Below are positions 1,992 through 60,787 of a stretch of 64,000 nucleotides of DNA, piece after piece. Made by a program: the position numbers and the translations under genes. The notes under the pieces were generated by a model. That model did not search any database. It worked only from the letters and a program-made list of their open reading frames with translations, and was not told the DNA's origin. How positions within the stretch are numbered: the first letter of the stretch is position 1; each line of letters begins with the position of its first letter. Location: positions 27,651,360-27,715,359 of the forward strand of contig NC_043019.1 of NCBI RefSeq assembly GCF_006345805.1, written 5' to 3'. The stretch comes from Octopus sinensis (lineage: Eukaryota).

Positions 1992-2126
1992 CTGGATATA
2001 CTGTGGAGGTCTTAAAACAGTAGCGTTCATCACTGCCATCTTTACAGTGATTCACCCCATCACACTTCAACAAGGAATCAATACAACTGCCATCTTCACA
2101 TCGGAATCGACCCCATCCGCAGGAGA
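1992..2126 (-). CDS. Exon 22: LDLa7
   Basis: catgcAG|...|GTAAAC, phase 1-1, 135 nt; SCGWGRFRCEDGSCIDSLLKCDGVNHCKDGSDERYCFKTSTVYP; gene continues beyond the window. Confidence 0.93.
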
Positions 2127-2872
2127 CTGCATGGGCAGACGAGAACAGAAATAAATGGTAAGCGAAGAAAAAGAAAGAGAGAAGGAGAAAAAGAAATAAA
2201 AGAAAGAAAAATAGAAGGAAGAAGAAAAGAGAATGAAAGAAAGTAGGAAAGGAAGGAAGAAAGAAAGAAAGAATATAGAAAGAAAGAAAGAAAGAAAGAA
2301 GGAAAGAAGGAAGGAAAGAAAGGCAAGCATGAAAATTGAATAGGAAAAACAAAAATTAATCAGTAACTTGAAAGATTAATGAATTGTTAATGAGAGATCA
2401 ACATGAATAATTAACATAAAGGGTTAACATAAACAAATAATATAAAAAGATAAAATGGCAGATTAACAAATTATTTCAGTTTTTATTTTATTTCGATTGT
2501 ATTCCAAATTCGCTCGAGTGGAATTTGTTTATTCCTTAGGCAAGTATTTTGACACTCCTTAGTTTAAGTGAAATCATTTTAACCAAGATATACAACATCC
2601 TTTTTCTGCACCAGGCTATTGCAGTTCCAGTCTTCATCATTCCTGTTTCTTTAATGCTTATGTTCCATACTGTTGTGGATTATTCATGACTAAAACACAG
2701 TGATACCTCCAGTAATCTCCATCTCACTTAACCTAATCTCAAAGGGTCAATTAGATGAGATTTTAGTCATTTTGCCATTTTCCTCATGACTTTTCATTAG
2801 TCATCTTCTACCATAACAATCCTCTTCTGCAAACTTAATGTTCATCAGTTATTTGCCATCTATCTTTTTCAT

Positions 2873-3232
2873 CAGGGATCCCCAGCCACCAGGCTGCAGA
2901 CCCCAGTACTGGGTCATGGATAATTTGGTACTGAGATCCACTCAAAGAATAAATTAAAAAATTTTATTTCTATTTCATTGACACAGTCTTCACGATGTTT
3001 TTGAATTATATATGTAGTGTGTGTGCATGTATGAGTGTGTGTGTGTGTGTGTGTGTGTGTGTGTGTGTGTGTGTGTGTGTGTGCGTGCACATGCGTAATA
3101 TGGTTATATGTAATGATTAAATTATATATTATACACTTAAAAGTGTTTTGTTGTGCATGTCATCCCCCAGTCTGTGAAAACATTGTCTGGCATGAAACCA
3201 GTCCCTAGTGCAAAAAAGGTTGGGGATGGCTG
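2873..3232. mobile_element. hAT (Charlie-type) MITE
   Basis: Imperfect TIR cagggatccccagcc / ggttggggatggctg (12/15); 3' end aaaccagtccctagtgcaaaaaaggttgggga is typical of Charlie-type MITEs; TSD degenerate. Confidence 0.65.
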
Positions 3233-5918
3233 CTTTCCACTACACCTCTGGTATGTCTTTCATGTGATCATCATATGAACTGATTCTTGTAGTCTTTAGT
3301 AGTTACCATCTCAAGTCACTGGAACTTACATTTACTTAAGGACAGCCAATACGATACCCTCATTGTGGAATGAGAACAGCATGGCAGGATGTAACATATA
3401 TGTTTAGAAACAAGCGACATTATCGACTTGAAAATATTTCAGTTTAGGCTGAGAAGGAGAAGAGGCAGTGCCTCTAACCTTCGTAAGTTGATTGTGTTTA
3501 ATATTTAAATTGAAATTCTGCAATGTCTGTCTGTATGTACATGTGTATGTATGCAGGTATATGTAGCAAATTTTGTATGGTGAACTGTCACAAGGCACAC
3601 AACCACAACATAAGCCAAGAAAGCGATTCAAGAACAACTTAAAAAGGATTGCATGGAATCTGTGAGATTTCAGAACAGGAGTGGGAAGGCATCATGTGAT
3701 AGGAAAACATGAAAGCAAAGAGTCTGTGATGGGGTGAGCACATTCCAGTGAAATGCAAATGAGTGGTCATGCATAAGGAGATCAGCATGAAAAGACAATT
3801 TCGTTTACCCTACATTTCCGTGCCTAGTCTATGAAATCTGTGGCTGCATATGTATGCTTTATGTGTGTGTGTGTGTGTGTGTGGTAATGGCTTTCTGCAC
3901 AGTTTCCACCCACAAGATTTGTTCACAAGACATTGAAAAATGGGCTAAAATTCCTTCTGATCAGAACTTGAAACTAATTGAAACTACCCACACAGTTTGG
4001 AGAAAGTTTTTATTAACCATAAAGGATACACTACTGATTGTTAATCATTAAATGTTAATGTAAGTATGTATGTATGTATATATGCATGCATGTGTATTTA
4101 TGTATGTGTGTATGTGTGTATATATATATATGTATATATATATATATATTATATTTATATTTACACTGAGACTATGTCAGCGGCAGTGACCTCTGACCAG
4201 AGTTTAATGAATGAAGACACAGAATAAATTGCCTTATTTGAAAACAAGTCAAGGTTGACATTAGGAAGAGCATCTTGGCTATAGAATACTACCGCAAGAA
4301 GTCTCATTCATCCCATGCCAGCATGGGAAAAGCATATATAAAAATAATGATGAATGAGAGACGGAATGTATGGTTTTGAATGTAAGAGTACTGAATGAAA
4401 CCATACTCATAATAAATTATGTGTCTTCAGTTCATTAGACTTACATGATCTTTCTAGAACTTATAGGTTACTCAGTATAAAATATCACACATACATACAC
4501 ACACACATACATACATGCATACATACATACATACATACATACATACATACATACATACATACATACATACATACATACATACATGTGTTTATTTTCCCTT
4601 ATTCCTTTCTGTTGAAGAGCATAGGCTCGAAACGTAAAAGACTTTTTCATTTTCCCTGAGCGTCAAACTAATATTCTTTCTTGGTGTTCATACACCTGCC
4701 TTCGTCTTCTGTTTTATATTTAGGCATTTGTATGTATAAATATATGTATATATGCAGACATACACCCGCACTCACACACACATATATATATGTCTGTGTG
4801 TGTGTATATATGTATATATACACACACACACACACACACACACACATATATATATATATATATATATTATATATATATATATATATATAAAATTTATATA
4901 AGTTTAAATTATTTTAATAATTTTTTAATTTTTAACTTTTATATTTTTAAATTAATTTTATGTATTGGCTTATGTTTTTCACTGTTTGATTTGCCTAATA
5001 GTCGTTTTATCTCTAATTTAATATAATATATATATATATACACCCTCCCATCACACACCTACACTAGCACATATACAAACATATGGCATATCCATTTCTT
5101 TTTCCATCTATTAGAGTTATTTCCCTTTTATTTTAATAACTGACGAGAATGTATCGTAGGTCTTTGCTCCAACATTTGAAACTCTGAGTACTATAATGAC
5201 AACCTTTTACTATATGTTCTAAATCATAAACATATAAATAATCCTCTATTTTTCTAATATCGAAGTCTCATTCTTTTGTTGTTACAGTTCATTATTATTA
5301 TTATTATTCTAATATATATATATGTATGTATGTATGTATGTAATGTTACTATTATTAACTATTATTATAAACAGGGTTCCTATAAGGCAGTGAGCTAGCA
5401 GAATTGTTAGAATGTTGGACAAAATACTTAGTGGTATTTCACTTGTCATTACACTCTGAGCAAGTACTAGTTATGCACTGGGATTGGTGTAATCGACTTA
5501 TCTCATCTCCCCAAATTTCAGGCCTTGTGCCTATAGCAGAAAGGATTATATAGAGTTCCTTAATTTTGATGGTGTATAAGAACATTTTGTACTAATATGT
5601 GATATATAAATGACTAAGTGATACATGCTTTGACAGATAAGTTTTCATAAGATAAATAGAAAGGTAGCAGTATATGGAGTTGCAGTGGACATATTATGTT
5701 TGTGACATAAACTGTGATTGTGACAAAATAAGTGGTAAGCCATGCTATCATGCAATATGCCATACTTTGCAGTGATATCTTATTTTCATTTTGTGTGCAC
5801 TAATATTTCTATCACTATAGCATTTCCACATCACTACAAACAAAAATTCTATTAAGTTGTGGCAGTGCATTATCAAAACTCCAGATATAACATGCTATAT
5901 CTGGCCCCTCTTTAATAC

Positions 5919-6055
5919 CTGGATGTTGTGTAGTACTCTTAATGCAGTTTCTTTCATCTTTCCCATCTTTGCAGTGTTGCACACCATCACAGACTTCATA
6001 AGCTCAATACACTCGCCATCATTACAGCGAAATTGATCTTTTCCACAAATTCCTT
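5919..6055 (-). CDS. Exon 21: LDLa6 with a 1-nt frameshift
   Basis: aacAG|...|GTATTA; 137 nt (138 expected). GICGKDQFRCNDGECIE in one frame, YEVCDGVQHCKDGKDERNCIKSTTQHP in the next; break at CT^TAT (6000-6001). Not in the ORF track. Confidence 0.88.
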
Positions 6056-59496: not shown

Positions 59497-59820
59497 GTGG
59501 ACAAGAGTAATGTGAGAGACTGACATCATCAATAGCTATGTCTCCCAGAGGACCCATTCCACGGGTTGCAGTGAGACTCACATTGACTTGAGTATCAAGT
59601 GGAAGATCGACACAACCCATGTACCAAAACGGTGTCTTTGCACCTGTTTCCTTCCACATGATCTTTTCATTGACAGTCACTTGGAGGCTACCAGTGTCAG
59701 ACCCATACATATAATAGTAAAATCTAAAGCTGCTTGTTTTTGATTCTTTGATGTTTGGAAATATGACATTTGTCTTGTCACCTGGACGACCTTTTGATGA
59801 ATCAGTTTGCAAGAAGTGAC
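59497..59820 (-). CDS. Exon 2: MAM1 C-terminal half
   Basis: ttccAG|...|GTAAGT, phase 1-1, 324 nt; HFLQTDSS...FRFYYYMYGSDTGSLQV...W...GDIAIDDVSLSHYSCP. Confidence 0.95.
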
Positions 59821-59890
59821 CTGGAAATAAGAAAAGGAGAGAAAATTAAACATGGGATATAACATTTATCACACACACACACACACACAC

Positions 59891-60075
59891 CAGGGGTATA
59901 TTTTGGGTGTGCTGGGTGTGCACTGCCCATCCATCAAAAATGGCAAATTTGTCATGAATATTAACCTTACTCATTAATTTAATCACAGATCTTAATGGAA
60001 CACTTTTGTTATACCCTTATTTGGTGGGATTCAGTGTGACAGCACACCCAGGACAACAACCACCATACGCCACTG
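59891..60075. mobile_element. hAT-type MITE
   Basis: TIR caggggtata / atacgccactg; subterminal gggtgtgctg / cagcacaccc; 8-bp flanks acacacac / atacacac. Confidence 0.6.
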
Positions 60076-60625
60076 ATACACACATGCAAATGCACCCTCC
60101 ACCACACACACACATGCATAGATACACACAGACATGCATATTCATGCTCACACTTTAGGCAAATATGCACACACACACATAAATACAGATATATACATAC
60201 CTACAGTTTATATACAATTAGATACACACACTCCAAGTGCTACTCACACACACACACACACACACACACACATGCATGCACATGCACACACACACATACA
60301 CATCCATATACACACACATGCACATACAAAGACATGCATATTCATGCTCACACTTTACACAAATATGCACACACACACACACACACACACAAACACACAA
60401 ATACAGATAAACATACCCACATTCCATTCTCAATTAAATACATACACTCCGAACCCTACTCACGCACACACACACACACATGCACACACATAAATGCAGA
60501 TATACACACCCAAACCCTACAAACATACCCTATGCCCCCCACCCCACATGCACATATGGCACACACACACACACACACACATGTATACATAAATGTTTAG
60601 AGAAAATCTTGCAGTAGACACTAAC

Positions 60626-60787
60626 CTCCAGTTGTGTTACTTGTGTGATCCCTCTGGGGACCAGTCAGTCCCTTTGCTTTGAAACCAGTGGTTCTGTGCC
60701 ACATAAATTGAGTACTTGTAGAGCAGTCTATGTCATAGTTGCACATGTTTGGTTCCTTAAAACTGCAGTTGGTCATCATCAAACCCA
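60626..60787 (-). CDS. Exon 1 (in window): MAM1 N-terminal half
   Basis: ctttcAG|...|GTTAGT, phase 1-1, 162 nt; GLMMTNCSFKEPNMCNYDIDCSTSTQFMWHRTTGFKAKGLTGPQRDHTSNTTG has the MAM CxFE..C..W..GP..DHT motif. Not in the ORF track. Confidence 0.9.

Follow-up and report, generated by a model that had tools for sequence, protein, structure and literature searches.

An internal serine protease domain among MAM and LDLa modules in a conserved cephalopod gene, read from an Octopus sinensis locus

Exons and domains in the window

The stretch of DNA analysed here (the window, 64,000 nucleotides) matches O. sinensis chromosome CM016881.1 at 100% identity. Twenty-two minus-strand exons, each bounded by AG and GT, were rebuilt from the sequence alone and span exactly 60787-1992, with a coding total of 3662 nt within 58,796 nt (Table 1). 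The exons are collinear with orthologous proteins and reach tblastn E-values down to 1e-69 per exon, so the chain is not due to chance. Read from 60787 to 1992, the domain order is MAM-MAM-LDLa-SRCR-LDLa-LDLa-SRCR-like-protease-LDLa-like-MAM-LDLa-LDLa-LDLa, and all LDLa exons are of phase 1-1. The gene runs on for about 74.6 kb to the left of the window edge, and the remaining O. sinensis exons up to the stop were found downstream of the window. The window is likely to hold the middle of one gene of about 155 kb, 22 exons with about 1220 codons, and the product would be a giant mosaic serine protease, extracellular and of type II transmembrane kind, whose two catalytic domains lie far apart.

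Table 1. Exons of the gene within the window and one annotated exon of doubtful status (window positions)
Feature	Position	Strand	Evidence
Exon 1 (first in window): MAM1 N-terminal part, phase 1 to 1	60626..60787	-	Splice sites; 100% to O. vulgaris P0121 residues 580-634; Pfam MAM
Exon 2: MAM1 C-terminal part	59497..59820	-	Splice sites; 97% to O. vulgaris P0121; Pfam MAM 7-161
Exon 3: MAM2 N-terminal part	56648..56806	-	Splice sites; 98% to O. vulgaris P0121
Exon 4: MAM2 C-terminal part	49886..50218	-	Splice sites; 98% to O. vulgaris P0121; second Pfam MAM stretch
Exon 5: LDLa1	41019..41132	-	Pfam Ldl_recept_a; O. vulgaris match
Exon 6: SRCR1 first half, phase 2 at end	37817..37970	-	100% to O. 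vulgaris; Pfam SRCR 1e-15
Exon 7: SRCR1 second half	37528..37694	-	O. vulgaris match
Exon 8: LDLa2	34473..34598	-	O. bimaculoides model XP_014778703.1 (old) reads past its donor, then stops
Exon 9: LDLa3	32065..32175	-	Top Pfam LDLa stretch
Exon 10: SRCR-like stem domain ('SRCR2') part a	30330..30453	-	Located via Argonauta P0001; splice sites; profile and predicted fold
Exon 11: SRCR-like domain part b, phase 2 to 2	27883..27990	-	Orthologue match; splice sites
Exon 12: SRCR-like domain part c, 38 nt, encodes SCTQARIQCNKP	26968..27005	-	Splice sites; SCTQARIQCNKP kept in orthologues
Exon 13: protease exon 1; pro-domain Cys 24689-24687, activation site Phe/Val 24650-24645, catalytic His 24527-24525	24517..24691	-	Codon mapping
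Exon 14: protease exon 2; catalytic Asp 21364-21362, Cys122 21304-21302	21235..21497	-	Codon mapping; 100% to O. vulgaris
Exon 15: protease exon 3; residue 189 = Pro, 18130-18128	18119..18249	-	Codon mapping
Exon 16: protease exon 4; GDSGGP, catalytic Ser 17000-16998, phase-1 donor at 16847	16847..17006	-	Codon mapping; junction WIVDKT/RC kept in orthologues
Exon 17: LDLa4, short divergent LDLa-like, six Cys	15331..15438	-	Pfam E 0.066; kept in orthologues
Exon 18: MAM3 N-terminal part	14083..14229	-	Orthologue match
Exon 19: MAM3 C-terminal part	11535..11897	-	Pfam MAM 6e-13 across full model
Exon 20: LDLa5	10088..10210	-	Pfam; RefSeq O. sinensis upstream model passes its donor to stop 10070-10068
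Exon 21: LDLa6, 137 nt; frame shift about 6003-6005, one base short vs intact orthologues	5919..6055	-	tblastn to orthologues
Exon 22: LDLa7, phase-1 donor at end	1992..2126	-	Pfam; orthologue match
Intronic ATG exon (MRVSYWLSLSK), start of RefSeq XP_036368544.1	3331..3363	-	Probably annotation artefact

A preliminary description of this DNA had proposed 22 in-phase exons; the chain, the splice sites and the span hold, but exon 21 is out of phase. The domain series it listed is supported by Pfam on the spliced protein for the MAM domains (6e-40 for the first two, with MAM3 significant alone), SRCR1, the protease (Trypsin, 1e-41), LDLa1-3, LDLa5 and LDLa7. LDLa4 falls below the Pfam threshold, and all six cysteines and the CDG..C.D..DE cluster are present in it. 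For 'SRCR2', the Pfam search gave no match and tblastn showed no similarity to SRCR1. It has a profile match to the CD163 SRCR repeats (E 3e-4) and a confident predicted fold (pLDDT 85-95), and the predicted unit made up of this domain and protease 1 can be superposed on the SRCR and protease structures of TMPRSS2, hepsin and enteropeptidase along some 350 alignment columns. This putative domain is thus recognisable solely by profile and predicted fold.

Orthologues and the frame break in LDLa6

The window protein matches O. vulgaris CAI9739539/40 at 98.5% over 1147 aa (residues 581-1727) without gaps. These entries represent one annotated 154 kb gene with the Pfam order LDLa, MAM, LDLa, Trypsin, MAM, LDLa, SRCR_2, Trypsin, and the protein is annotated in two lengths, 2647 and 3279 aa. 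The 3279-aa form extends through about 17 LDLa, Fz, further LDLa and SRCR_2 to a second protease; a continuation into a second protease domain had been suggested earlier, and both this model and the rest of the O. sinensis locus bear it out. Argonauta P0001 is collinear with 22/22 exons at 46-83% identity per exon, with the post-protease modules conserved as well as the pre-protease ones. Larval RNA-seq contigs of Sepia esculenta (7.7-8.3 kb, at least six runs, identified in PMC10571815 and PMC11917092) carry an open 2219-aa frame with an anchor, SEA and five MAM, which passes on through protease-LDLa-MAM-LDLa-LDLa to a stop and a 3'UTR of about 1 kb. The cuttlefish thus has a shorter mRNA ending two LDLa past MAM3. 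A second cephalopod contig, L001, covers MAM, the protease and about six LDLa repeats beyond it. The possible membrane anchor of the preliminary description exists, but it is N-terminal rather than downstream. This position is seen in the Sepia orthologue only, and neither P0176 nor P0178, the 'genes' annotated downstream, showed a hydrophobic anchor or signal, nor did any part of P0177 past the protease. For octopus, we infer the long two-protease form from one annotation (O. vulgaris) and exon-phase logic.

The two halves of the LDLa6 exon lie in different frames, with base 6003 common to both tblastn segments in this one assembly, and LDLa7 is out of frame as assembled because this 137-nt exon breaks the frame. 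O. vulgaris, O. bimaculoides and Argonauta all have this repeat in one unbroken frame, and comparison with these sequences suggests that the break is most likely an assembly indel. It is also the reason why RefSeq splits the O. sinensis locus into two genes, of 2373 aa and 1566 aa, the latter named 'LRP2-like'. The names given elsewhere are 'MALRD1-like' and 'corin' in O. bimaculoides and 'MALRD2' in O. vulgaris and Argonauta. Splitting and mislabelling by annotators had been foreseen; the O. vulgaris annotation already gives one protein. The gene is not new to databases, where it stands under several misleading names.

Near LDLa6/LDLa7, the two NCBI annotations (O. sinensis and O. bimaculoides) begin a new model, and it is close to the equivalent place that the Sepia mRNAs finish, so a break or alternative end there could be biological. 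We weighed the reading of two adjacent genes, namely a MAM-rich protease of 2373 aa ending after LDLa5 and a separate LRP2-like/corin-like gene of 1566 aa starting before LDLa7, with the 3279-aa O. vulgaris protein as a fusion artefact. The RefSeq calls indeed end at window position 10068 and resume at 3363, the O. bimaculoides 'corin' model likewise starts at LDLa6, the 3'UTR of the Sepia mRNAs two LDLa beyond MAM3 looks real, and a link between proteases 1 and 2 was not found in the transcripts examined. However, the split sits exactly around the sole frameshifted exon, and the downstream models, which lack both signal peptide and anchor, start at an intronic ATG in O. sinensis and at an out-of-frame ATG of the LDLa6 exon in O. 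bimaculoides. The Argonauta model and contig L001 extend through LDLa6, LDLa7 and further, the phases of all exons are compatible with 1-1 joining, and nothing resembling a terminal exon can be seen, which makes two genes unlikely. Even then the protease would be internal, because LDLa4-MAM3-LDLa5 come after it.

Somewhat less likely still is a genuine one-base deletion in O. sinensis, which would leave the long form truncated or degraded, or the exon skipped, with the C-terminal half decaying or the allele a polymorphic null. The frame break does stand in the deposited chromosome sequence, and skipping of LDLa6 would preserve the frame since the LDLa exons are all phase 1-1. Nevertheless, about 1500 downstream codons are open, at 96.7% to O. 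vulgaris, and preserve every cysteine pattern, the three other octopods have an undamaged LDLa6, and single-base indels are a frequent error of long-read assemblies.

Internal position of the protease

As had been described, the last protease exon ends in a phase-1 donor (...GAT AAA ACA A/gtaaga at 16847) and not in a stop, and it joins the next acceptor at 15438, also of phase 1. The WIVDKT/RC junction is kept in Argonauta, Sepia and SRR27666060, and four orthologues pass WIVD(K/Q)T-RC directly into LDLa4, in Sepia at the mRNA level. The Argonauta and O. vulgaris models and the cuttlefish mRNA contigs are uninterrupted here, which places the catalytic domain inside a single frame as proposed; because the cuttlefish RNA-seq contigs are open through the junction, its internal position is seen in mature mRNA. 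A search for short junction-spanning fragments in octopus found none, and the transcript continuity reported here is that of Sepia. It is very improbable that the transcript stays unspliced at the 16847 donor, reads on to the stop near 16695 and so yields a protease of the classical C-terminal layout, the later exons belonging elsewhere: the frame is open for 50 codons beyond the donor, but the resulting tail (GCCCCCCYCYCC...) is translated low-complexity microsatellite sequence that none of the orthologues has, these proteins go on into LDLa4, and the RefSeq model of the same assembly ends downstream of the post-protease exons.

Proposed protein, activation and relation to known systems

Judging from the orthologues, the protein of this single gene would begin with a cytoplasmic tail, a signal-anchor helix, SEA and a mucin-like stalk, followed by LDLa and five MAM domains, the last two of which lie inside the window. 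After the MAM array come LDLa-SRCR-LDLa-LDLa, the SRCR-like stem domain and protease domain 1, and past it an LDLa-like module, MAM and three LDLa, where the window ends. The long form would continue with about 14 further LDLa with mucin linkers, Fz, about seven LDLa, SRCR_2 and a C-terminal protease domain 2. Binding and positioning at an epithelial surface would be the role of the MAM, LDLa, SRCR and Fz modules.

The His/Asp/Ser triad of protease 1 is intact by alignment to enteropeptidase and by codon positions. The two protease domains are 32% identical, lie about 1560 residues apart and fall inside one lophotrochozoan clade in our tree. In both, Phe precedes the activation cleavage and Asp189 is absent; the site of protease 2 is QKF/IIGG, and among orthologues the residue before the cut is Tyr or Phe (Phe in O. 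sinensis). Protease 1 has Pro at 189 together with Gly216 and Ala226, which rules out an S1 pocket of the trypsin type and makes a preference for non-basic side chains probable. Cleavage of the zymogen after the conserved aromatic residue would expose a Val/Ile N-terminus, and a disulfide between the pro-domain Cys and Cys122 would hold both chains together afterwards. Because the predicted non-basic S1 preference fits both its own activation site and that of domain 2, auto-activation or mutual activation is plausible.

MALRD1 and MALRD2 also alternate many MAM and LDLa modules, but we rejected membership, as MALRD proteins are without protease, SRCR, SEA and Fz and the name is a best-hit transfer. 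In hepsin and TMPRSS2, the ectodomain aligns with the predicted stem and protease 1 at a TM of 0.65-0.69, with 22-25% sequence identity, and both proteins end at the protease. Enteropeptidase (TMPRSS15) is the nearest solved protease domain to protease 1 by sequence (E 6e-33), and shares the anchor-SEA-LDLa-MAM-SRCR-protease vocabulary and the pro-domain Cys-Cys122 link. The octopus gene differs in that it lacks CUB, has Pro where enteropeptidase has Asp189 and Phe where that enzyme has Lys before the cut, and does not end with its protease; orthology was rejected by the protease tree. The C-terminal half of the long form resembles corin in Fz, LDLa repeats, SRCR_2 and protease, and the corresponding O. 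bimaculoides piece is listed at NCBI as 'atrial natriuretic peptide-converting enzyme'. However, it has one Fz instead of two, many more LDLa and no anchor of its own, no Fz lies inside the window, and protease 2 groups with nemertean and brachiopod domains rather than vertebrate corin.

Molluscan 'corin-like' proteins (for example O. bimaculoides XP_014777695.1; Pomacea, Sinanodonta, Mya, Gigantopelta), known from predictions alone, have an internal protease followed by MAM and LDLa and belong to the same lophotrochozoan protease clade, but form a sister sub-clade with Fz ahead of the protease and no N-terminal MAM array. Drosophila Nudel is likewise a very large secreted/extracellular mosaic, with a central active S1 domain between LDLa on both sides and a second protease-like domain, but is without MAM, SRCR, SEA and Fz. 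In a quick tree with long branches, a weak test, tardigrade 'nudel' protease domains fell outside the clade of the octopus gene, and no evidence of orthology to Nudel was found. Polyserase-1 (TMPRSS9) and other polyserases share the type II anchor, more than one S1 domain per polypeptide, at least one of them internal, and LDLa in the stem. Their domains stand in tandem with short linkers, whereas LDLa/MAM/Fz modules separate the two in octopus, which group with lophotrochozoan proteins and not with vertebrate TMPRSS9 and carry Phe instead of Arg at the activation sites.

The architecture had been put forward as unusual and possibly lineage-specific. Among the proteins found, sequence comparison indicates that its exact form is confined to cephalopods, but MAM/LDLa modules behind an internal protease are frequent among proteins predicted for other molluscs, a nemertean and a brachiopod, and the gene belongs with the polyserase and Nudel exceptions already named. 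With two widely separated catalytic domains in one chain it is polyserase-like, and we regard it as a real, conserved and uncharacterised cephalopod variant of the polyserase/Nudel type.

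Exon chain and domains of the window protein

The internal position of protease 1, the catalytic domain encoded in the window, is established for the gene family and very likely for this locus. The exon chain that carries it lies in AT-rich eukaryotic DNA (GC 0.26-0.41), rich in microsatellites and interspersed repeats, where MAM, LDLa, SRCR and trypsin signatures were evident in stop-free stretches of the minus strand. Exon ends were set by AG/GT site scoring around each stretch and by reading the junctions by eye; for three short exons 5' of the protease, the Argonauta orthologue gave the location and the splice sites gave the boundaries. 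In all, 22 exons with canonical splice sites make up the model, which runs from 60787 to 1992 and contains 3662 coding bases within 58,796; its outer coordinates coincide exactly with those of the preliminary description. That description also had the last protease exon end in a phase-1 donor rather than a stop, and we read the same junction (AAA ACA A↓gtaaga at 16847, phase 1), with the next exon beginning at 15438, again in phase 1. Its claim of 22 in-phase exons stood as regards the chain and failed for exon 21 (LDLa6), whose 137 nt lie in two frames.

Pfam identified protease 1 as Trypsin with 143.5 bits (cut-off 20.6; E 1e-41; model positions 5-220 of 220), together with MAM twice (6e-40), SRCR (1e-15) and three LDLa upstream of the protease, and with LDLa5, the second half of LDLa6 and LDLa7 downstream of it. 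MAM3 was absent from the first Pfam scan listing, where it formed part of a longer piece, and matched MAM over the full model length when scanned alone (6e-13). LDLa4 is a shortened repeat that stays below threshold (E 0.066) and keeps the six cysteines and the acidic calcium cluster; LDLa2-3 lie upstream of protease 1 and LDLa4-7 downstream. The O. sinensis SRCR2 peptide had no match in Pfam, and SRCR1 as a tblastn query against 24-33 kb for SRCR2 returned only noise. We accept SRCR2 as a predicted SRCR-like stem domain because a four-orthologue profile compared with PDB sequences matched the CD163 SRCR repeats (E 3e-4, summed over weak repeats), and because of an AlphaFold model built with 12 relatives on the O. 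vulgaris segment that is 98.5% identical to the window. In this model the SRCR2 region has a pLDDT of 85-95, disorder is confined to the activation loop, and the stem with protease 1 aligns over about 350 columns with the SRCR and protease ectodomains of TMPRSS2, hepsin and enteropeptidase.

The microsatellite and 8-nt-period arrays of the window, some of which are given in the table, yield spurious long open reading frames, and one microsatellite array supplies the open read-through tail past the 16847 donor. SINE-type repeats are abundant in octopus genomes, and the family of about 400 nt found in the introns resembles them; further copies lie downstream in the O. sinensis locus, and an ARAGORN scan of the window for the tRNA-like head of a SINE found none. 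Two short open reading frames with a common motif are probably remnants of one retroelement family.

Coordinates of selected features in the window
Feature	Window position	Strand	Remark
LDLa6 exon (exon 21)	6055-5919	-	frame change at ~6003-6005; base 6003 counted in both segments of the tblastn alignment with the O. vulgaris protein
Activation site of protease 1	24645-24650	-	AEF↓VQFG
End of upstream RefSeq product	10068-10088		product ends at 10068, LDLa5 donor at 10088; position 3296 of the downstream locus L002
Start of downstream RefSeq product	3331-3363		ATG at 3363, in the LDLa6-LDLa7 intron; position 10001 of L002
~400-nt interspersed repeat family, introns	13469-13882, 19527-19924, 32531-32869, 33147-33534, 38046-38438, 42013-42225, 42527-42915, 62804-63198	both orientations	83-96% alike
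Other dispersed intron repeat families	5-180, 9088-9447, 24116-24291, 31161-31336; also 12519-12818 / 32528-32827		60-90% alike
Microsatellite and 8-nt-period arrays	4432-4864, 7600-8160, 50973-51510, 53740-54650		many others
Short ORF with common motif	27285-27578	+	...RGHAYKVRKQHS..RKHFFTLRVAEAWNKLP / ..GHSYKIKKQHSTRDFQKHLFTLRIAEA, shared with the next
Short ORF with common motif	15020-15223	-	shared with the preceding

Internal position of the protease and extent of the gene

A query across the 16847/15438 junction, aimed at octopus RNA-seq contigs, found no short protein fragments, and the transcript evidence comes from a cuttlefish cluster of 2217-2221-aa proteins from dozens of assembled contigs. 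The six contigs examined measure 7.7-8.3 kb, and in each a 5' leader precedes a single uninterrupted frame of 2219 codons, which closes with TGA and is followed by about 1 kb of AT-rich sequence; two of the runs come from larval RNA-seq of Sepia esculenta (PMC10571815, PMC11917092). At its N-terminus the encoded protein has a cytoplasmic tail, then a strongly hydrophobic helix (residues 73-91) and an SEA domain (3e-14); a mucin-like stalk leads on to LDLa, five MAM, LDLa, SRCR, two LDLa, an SRCR-like domain and the protease, after which come an RC...-LDLa-like repeat, MAM and two LDLa. The frame of the Sepia mRNA thus runs through the protease into LDLa-MAM-LDLa-LDLa, and the internal protease proposed earlier came through the main refutation test set for it, namely that transcripts might terminate after the protease exon. 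The WIVD(K/Q)T-RC junction is kept in four of four orthologues. The octopus models are N-terminally incomplete, and the window does not contain the N-terminus.

Three relatives were recovered with the spliced window protein as query: a model from Argonauta hians in which each of the 22 exons has its counterpart in the same order, at 46-83% identity per exon; an old model from O. bimaculoides, which reads through the LDLa2 donor and ends there; and an intron-less contig from a cephalopod run. The query of the orthologue search was a chimera of the O. bimaculoides N-terminus and the window protein, which served as a search device rather than as a claimed sequence and of which only the window part was scored. 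The O. vulgaris protein CAI9739540.1 (2647 aa) is 98.5% identical to the window protein over 1147 residues without a gap, and its cluster includes a 3279-aa O. vulgaris isoform, the O. sinensis protein XP_036368544.1 ('LRP2-like', 1566 aa) and the O. bimaculoides protein XP_052831918.1 ('atrial natriuretic peptide-converting enzyme', 1497 aa). In the long O. vulgaris model about 1800 residues follow protease 1; past LDLa7 it has about 14 LDLa with Thr-rich linkers, Fz (7e-15), about 7 LDLa, SRCR_2 (9e-9) and Trypsin (2e-40), and this second trypsin domain (protease 2) is complete and forms the C-terminal end. All exons of the long form are present downstream in O. sinensis, up to a stop about 74.6 kb past the window, and the O. 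vulgaris gene is 154 kb long. The continuation into a second protease, raised earlier as a possibility, is borne out at the level of the gene model, and the O. vulgaris model together with the O. sinensis exons predicts two S1 domains in one polypeptide. Neither a signal peptide nor an anchor was found in either downstream model or in the post-protease part of the long O. vulgaris protein.

One gene carries five names across four octopod annotations, and RefSeq cuts it in two in O. sinensis. The RefSeq models were placed on the window through the first 13,363 bases of the downstream locus L002, which equal window 13363-1 at 100% and put the window on O. sinensis chromosome CM016881.1. The upstream product (2373 aa) ends at the first stop met after read-through of the LDLa5 donor, the downstream one, XP_036368544.1, starts from an ATG in the LDLa6-LDLa7 intron, and the split flanks the frameshifted LDLa6 exon exactly. 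The 'corin' model of O. bimaculoides (XP_052831918.1) takes an out-of-frame start ATG within its own intact LDLa6 exon, reads into the intron and then joins LDLa7; its first ~45 residues are therefore, as read from the sequence, not real protein. The earlier expectation that annotators might split or mislabel this gene was correct on both counts, given the O. sinensis split and the 'LRP2-like', 'corin' and MALRD-type names, and any study of expression or of the proteome that relies on the existing names may be measuring fragments of this protease, or of its paralogues, unawares. Octopus skin-mucus proteome lists name 'MAM and LDL-receptor' proteins with the paralogue unspecified (PMC11431876), and these entries are only a lead to the present gene.

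The simplest reading is that this is one gene and that a one-base indel caused the RefSeq break. Within the LDLa6 exon the first 18 and last 28 codons differ in frame, and in the assembly this puts LDLa7 out of frame, with stops after it; the two halves were kept as separate pieces in all searches, and neither a stop nor the frame break was bridged in any protein. Caution is called for by the alternative that the gene breaks or ends short near LDLa6/LDLa7, as the Sepia mRNAs end close to the equivalent position: their frame closes near 6800-6930 of the contigs with two LDLa past MAM3, ...NKPPGST and a stop, and the ~1 kb AT-rich 3'UTR that follows is convincing. Contig L001, from another cephalopod, extends from MAM through the protease into six LDLa, past the point where the Sepia mRNA ends. 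The terminal stop of this contig was rejected as a true C-terminus, since AGA G↓GTTAGT is phase-1 donor-like and is followed by repeat-rich sequence; the contig end is probably a retained intron. The Sepia stop set against this continuation suggests alternative 3' ends, and in cuttlefish, at least, a short isoform with one protease does exist. As to the origin of the indel in the one-gene reading, it may be a genuine and very recent lesion in O. sinensis, but O. vulgaris, O. bimaculoides and Argonauta all have the LDLa6 repeat intact, and an assembly indel is likely; skipping of exon 21 would keep the frame, since all LDLa exons are phase 1-1. Read-through of the 16847 donor to the stop near 16695 was rejected, because the resulting tail is a translated microsatellite with no counterpart anywhere.

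Catalytic machinery, predicted activation and proposed origin

Among solved proteases, the enteropeptidase light chain is the closest to protease 1 in sequence (E 6e-33). Protease 1 has TAAHC, DIALL and GDSGGP, and in a 13-sequence alignment His57, Asp102, Ser195, Asp194 and the usual disulfide cysteines are invariant, as are the pro-domain Cys (ECGK) and Cys122 (QPACLP). Because both of the latter are in place, activated protease 1 should stay linked to its stem by the disulfide they are expected to form. The activation site has Phe at P1 where enteropeptidase has Lys; the five orthologues all carry Phe or Tyr there, and the N-terminus that the cut would expose reads V/I-Q-F/Y-G. Position 189 is Pro, not Asp, with Gly216 and Ala226. 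Protease 2 (near residue 3030 of the 3279-aa model) has QKF↓IIGG and Thr at 189. Among nemertean, brachiopod, bivalve and gastropod relatives, many have Tyr or Phe before the cut and all are without Asp189, although these residues were located by pattern matching and positions may be off by one; the aromatic activation site looks like a clade-wide trait.

By the accepted structure-function rules for serine proteases, an S1 pocket without Asp189 does not select Arg or Lys. A non-basic, perhaps aromatic, P1 preference would fit both activation sites, and for this reason self-activation, or reciprocal activation of the two protease domains, is a reasonable hypothesis. That the aromatic site is shared is a hint that activation may be self-contained, in contrast to the Arg/Lys-driven cascades known from vertebrates and insects. 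MAM, LDLa, SRCR and Fz are binding modules in characterised homologues. We speculate further, as a reading that we consider unlikely in its full form, that the gene would encode a membrane-anchored 'cascade in one chain' of coleoids. Its two S1 domains, only distantly related and separated by about 1560 residues, would both be cut after Phe/Tyr and both be made for non-basic P1, so that each could activate itself or the other, and a choice between 3' ends would yield either a one-protease or a two-protease form. On this reading the gene would be one of a radiation of mosaic surface proteases that is specific to lophotrochozoans, has aromatic activation sites and includes no studied member.

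The origin of the two domains was approached with a quick maximum-likelihood tree of 60 protease domains, with SH-aLRT support only. Protease 1 clusters with its counterparts in O. vulgaris, Argonauta, Sepia and contig L001 (support 100); the neighbours of this group in the tree are two paralogues from O. vulgaris and proteins of bivalves, in all of which the protease is C-terminal. The nearest paralogues (P0008 and P0010, on another chromosome-scale contig of O. vulgaris) are MAM/LDLa-rich and have the protease at the C-terminus. The enclosing clade of 23 domains contains only lophotrochozoan sequences (support 98); protease 2 falls in a sister sub-clade with nemertean and brachiopod C-terminal domains and with molluscan 'corin-like' proteins that have an internal protease followed by MAM/LDLa tails. 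Vertebrate corin, matriptase and TMPRSS9 and deuterostome enteropeptidase-like proteins are placed elsewhere in the tree; thus the database names are, by this tree, architectural look-alikes and not orthology. Protease 1 and protease 2 share only 32% identity, which argues that the gene is not a recent internal duplication. Since the protease is C-terminal in the nearest paralogues, its internal position here would be secondary. This one quick tree suggests that, within the cephalopod lineage, a long block was added downstream of the C-terminal catalytic domain of a MAM-rich protease; with its phase 1-1 exons the gene would offer a tractable case of exon-shuffling.

Comparison with known protease systems

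Protease 1 passes the Pfam cut-off for peptidase family S1, and the triad, Asp194 and the Val after the predicted cut are all in place. The stem modules SEA, LDLa, SRCR and MAM, the pro-domain Cys and Cys122 are those of type II transmembrane serine proteases (TTSPs), and the Sepia orthologue has a strongly hydrophobic helix (73-91), the putative signal anchor, followed by SEA, whereas the octopus N-terminus is outside the window. TTSPs have the protease at the extreme C-terminus, but here at least LDLa-MAM-LDLa-LDLa follows protease 1 in the Sepia mRNA; they are cut after Arg or Lys (R/K↓(I/V)VGG), but both domains here are predicted to be cut after Phe. Enteropeptidase has CUB in its stem and Asp189, whereas Pfam scans found no CUB here and residue 189 is Pro; the Branchiostoma and Holothuria proteins annotated as enteropeptidase(-like) fall outside the 23-domain clade (SH-aLRT 98) in a quick tree in which they stand for enteropeptidase. 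Corin combines Fz, LDLa and SRCR with a C-terminal protease; Fz is absent from the window, whereas the downstream half has Fz, SRCR_2 and Trypsin, and vertebrate corin does not group with protease 2. MALRD1/2 have no catalytic domain and are made up of MAM and LDLa alone, whereas Trypsin, SRCR, SEA and Fz are present here.

Polyserases have at least two S1 domains per polypeptide, which the annotated 3279-aa O. vulgaris model matches. Nudel has a central S1 domain with LDLa on either side, as here, and the resemblance is one of design only; a tardigrade protein annotated 'nudel', the one Nudel entry in the tree, falls outside the clade on very long branches. Our literature searches for polyserase or TTSP in molluscs or cephalopods, and for MALRD in octopus, found nothing specific to this family. 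The gene is not new to databases, where O. vulgaris has a single-gene model. The earlier claim of an unusual, possibly lineage-specific architecture therefore holds in part: the predicted plan of anchor, SEA, MAM array, protease, ~1560 residues of modules and protease is, as far as we found, undescribed in the literature, as are the putative aromatic activation sites and the lophotrochozoan clade as a whole, but the design class is known and kindred designs are common in predicted lophotrochozoan proteomes. The relevance of the gene is modest, on the three counts of annotation, protease biology and evolution. The whole gene belongs to the known design class of polyserase- and Nudel-like multi-domain proteases, and offers a clean, conserved example of a catalytic domain mid-way in a very long module chain.
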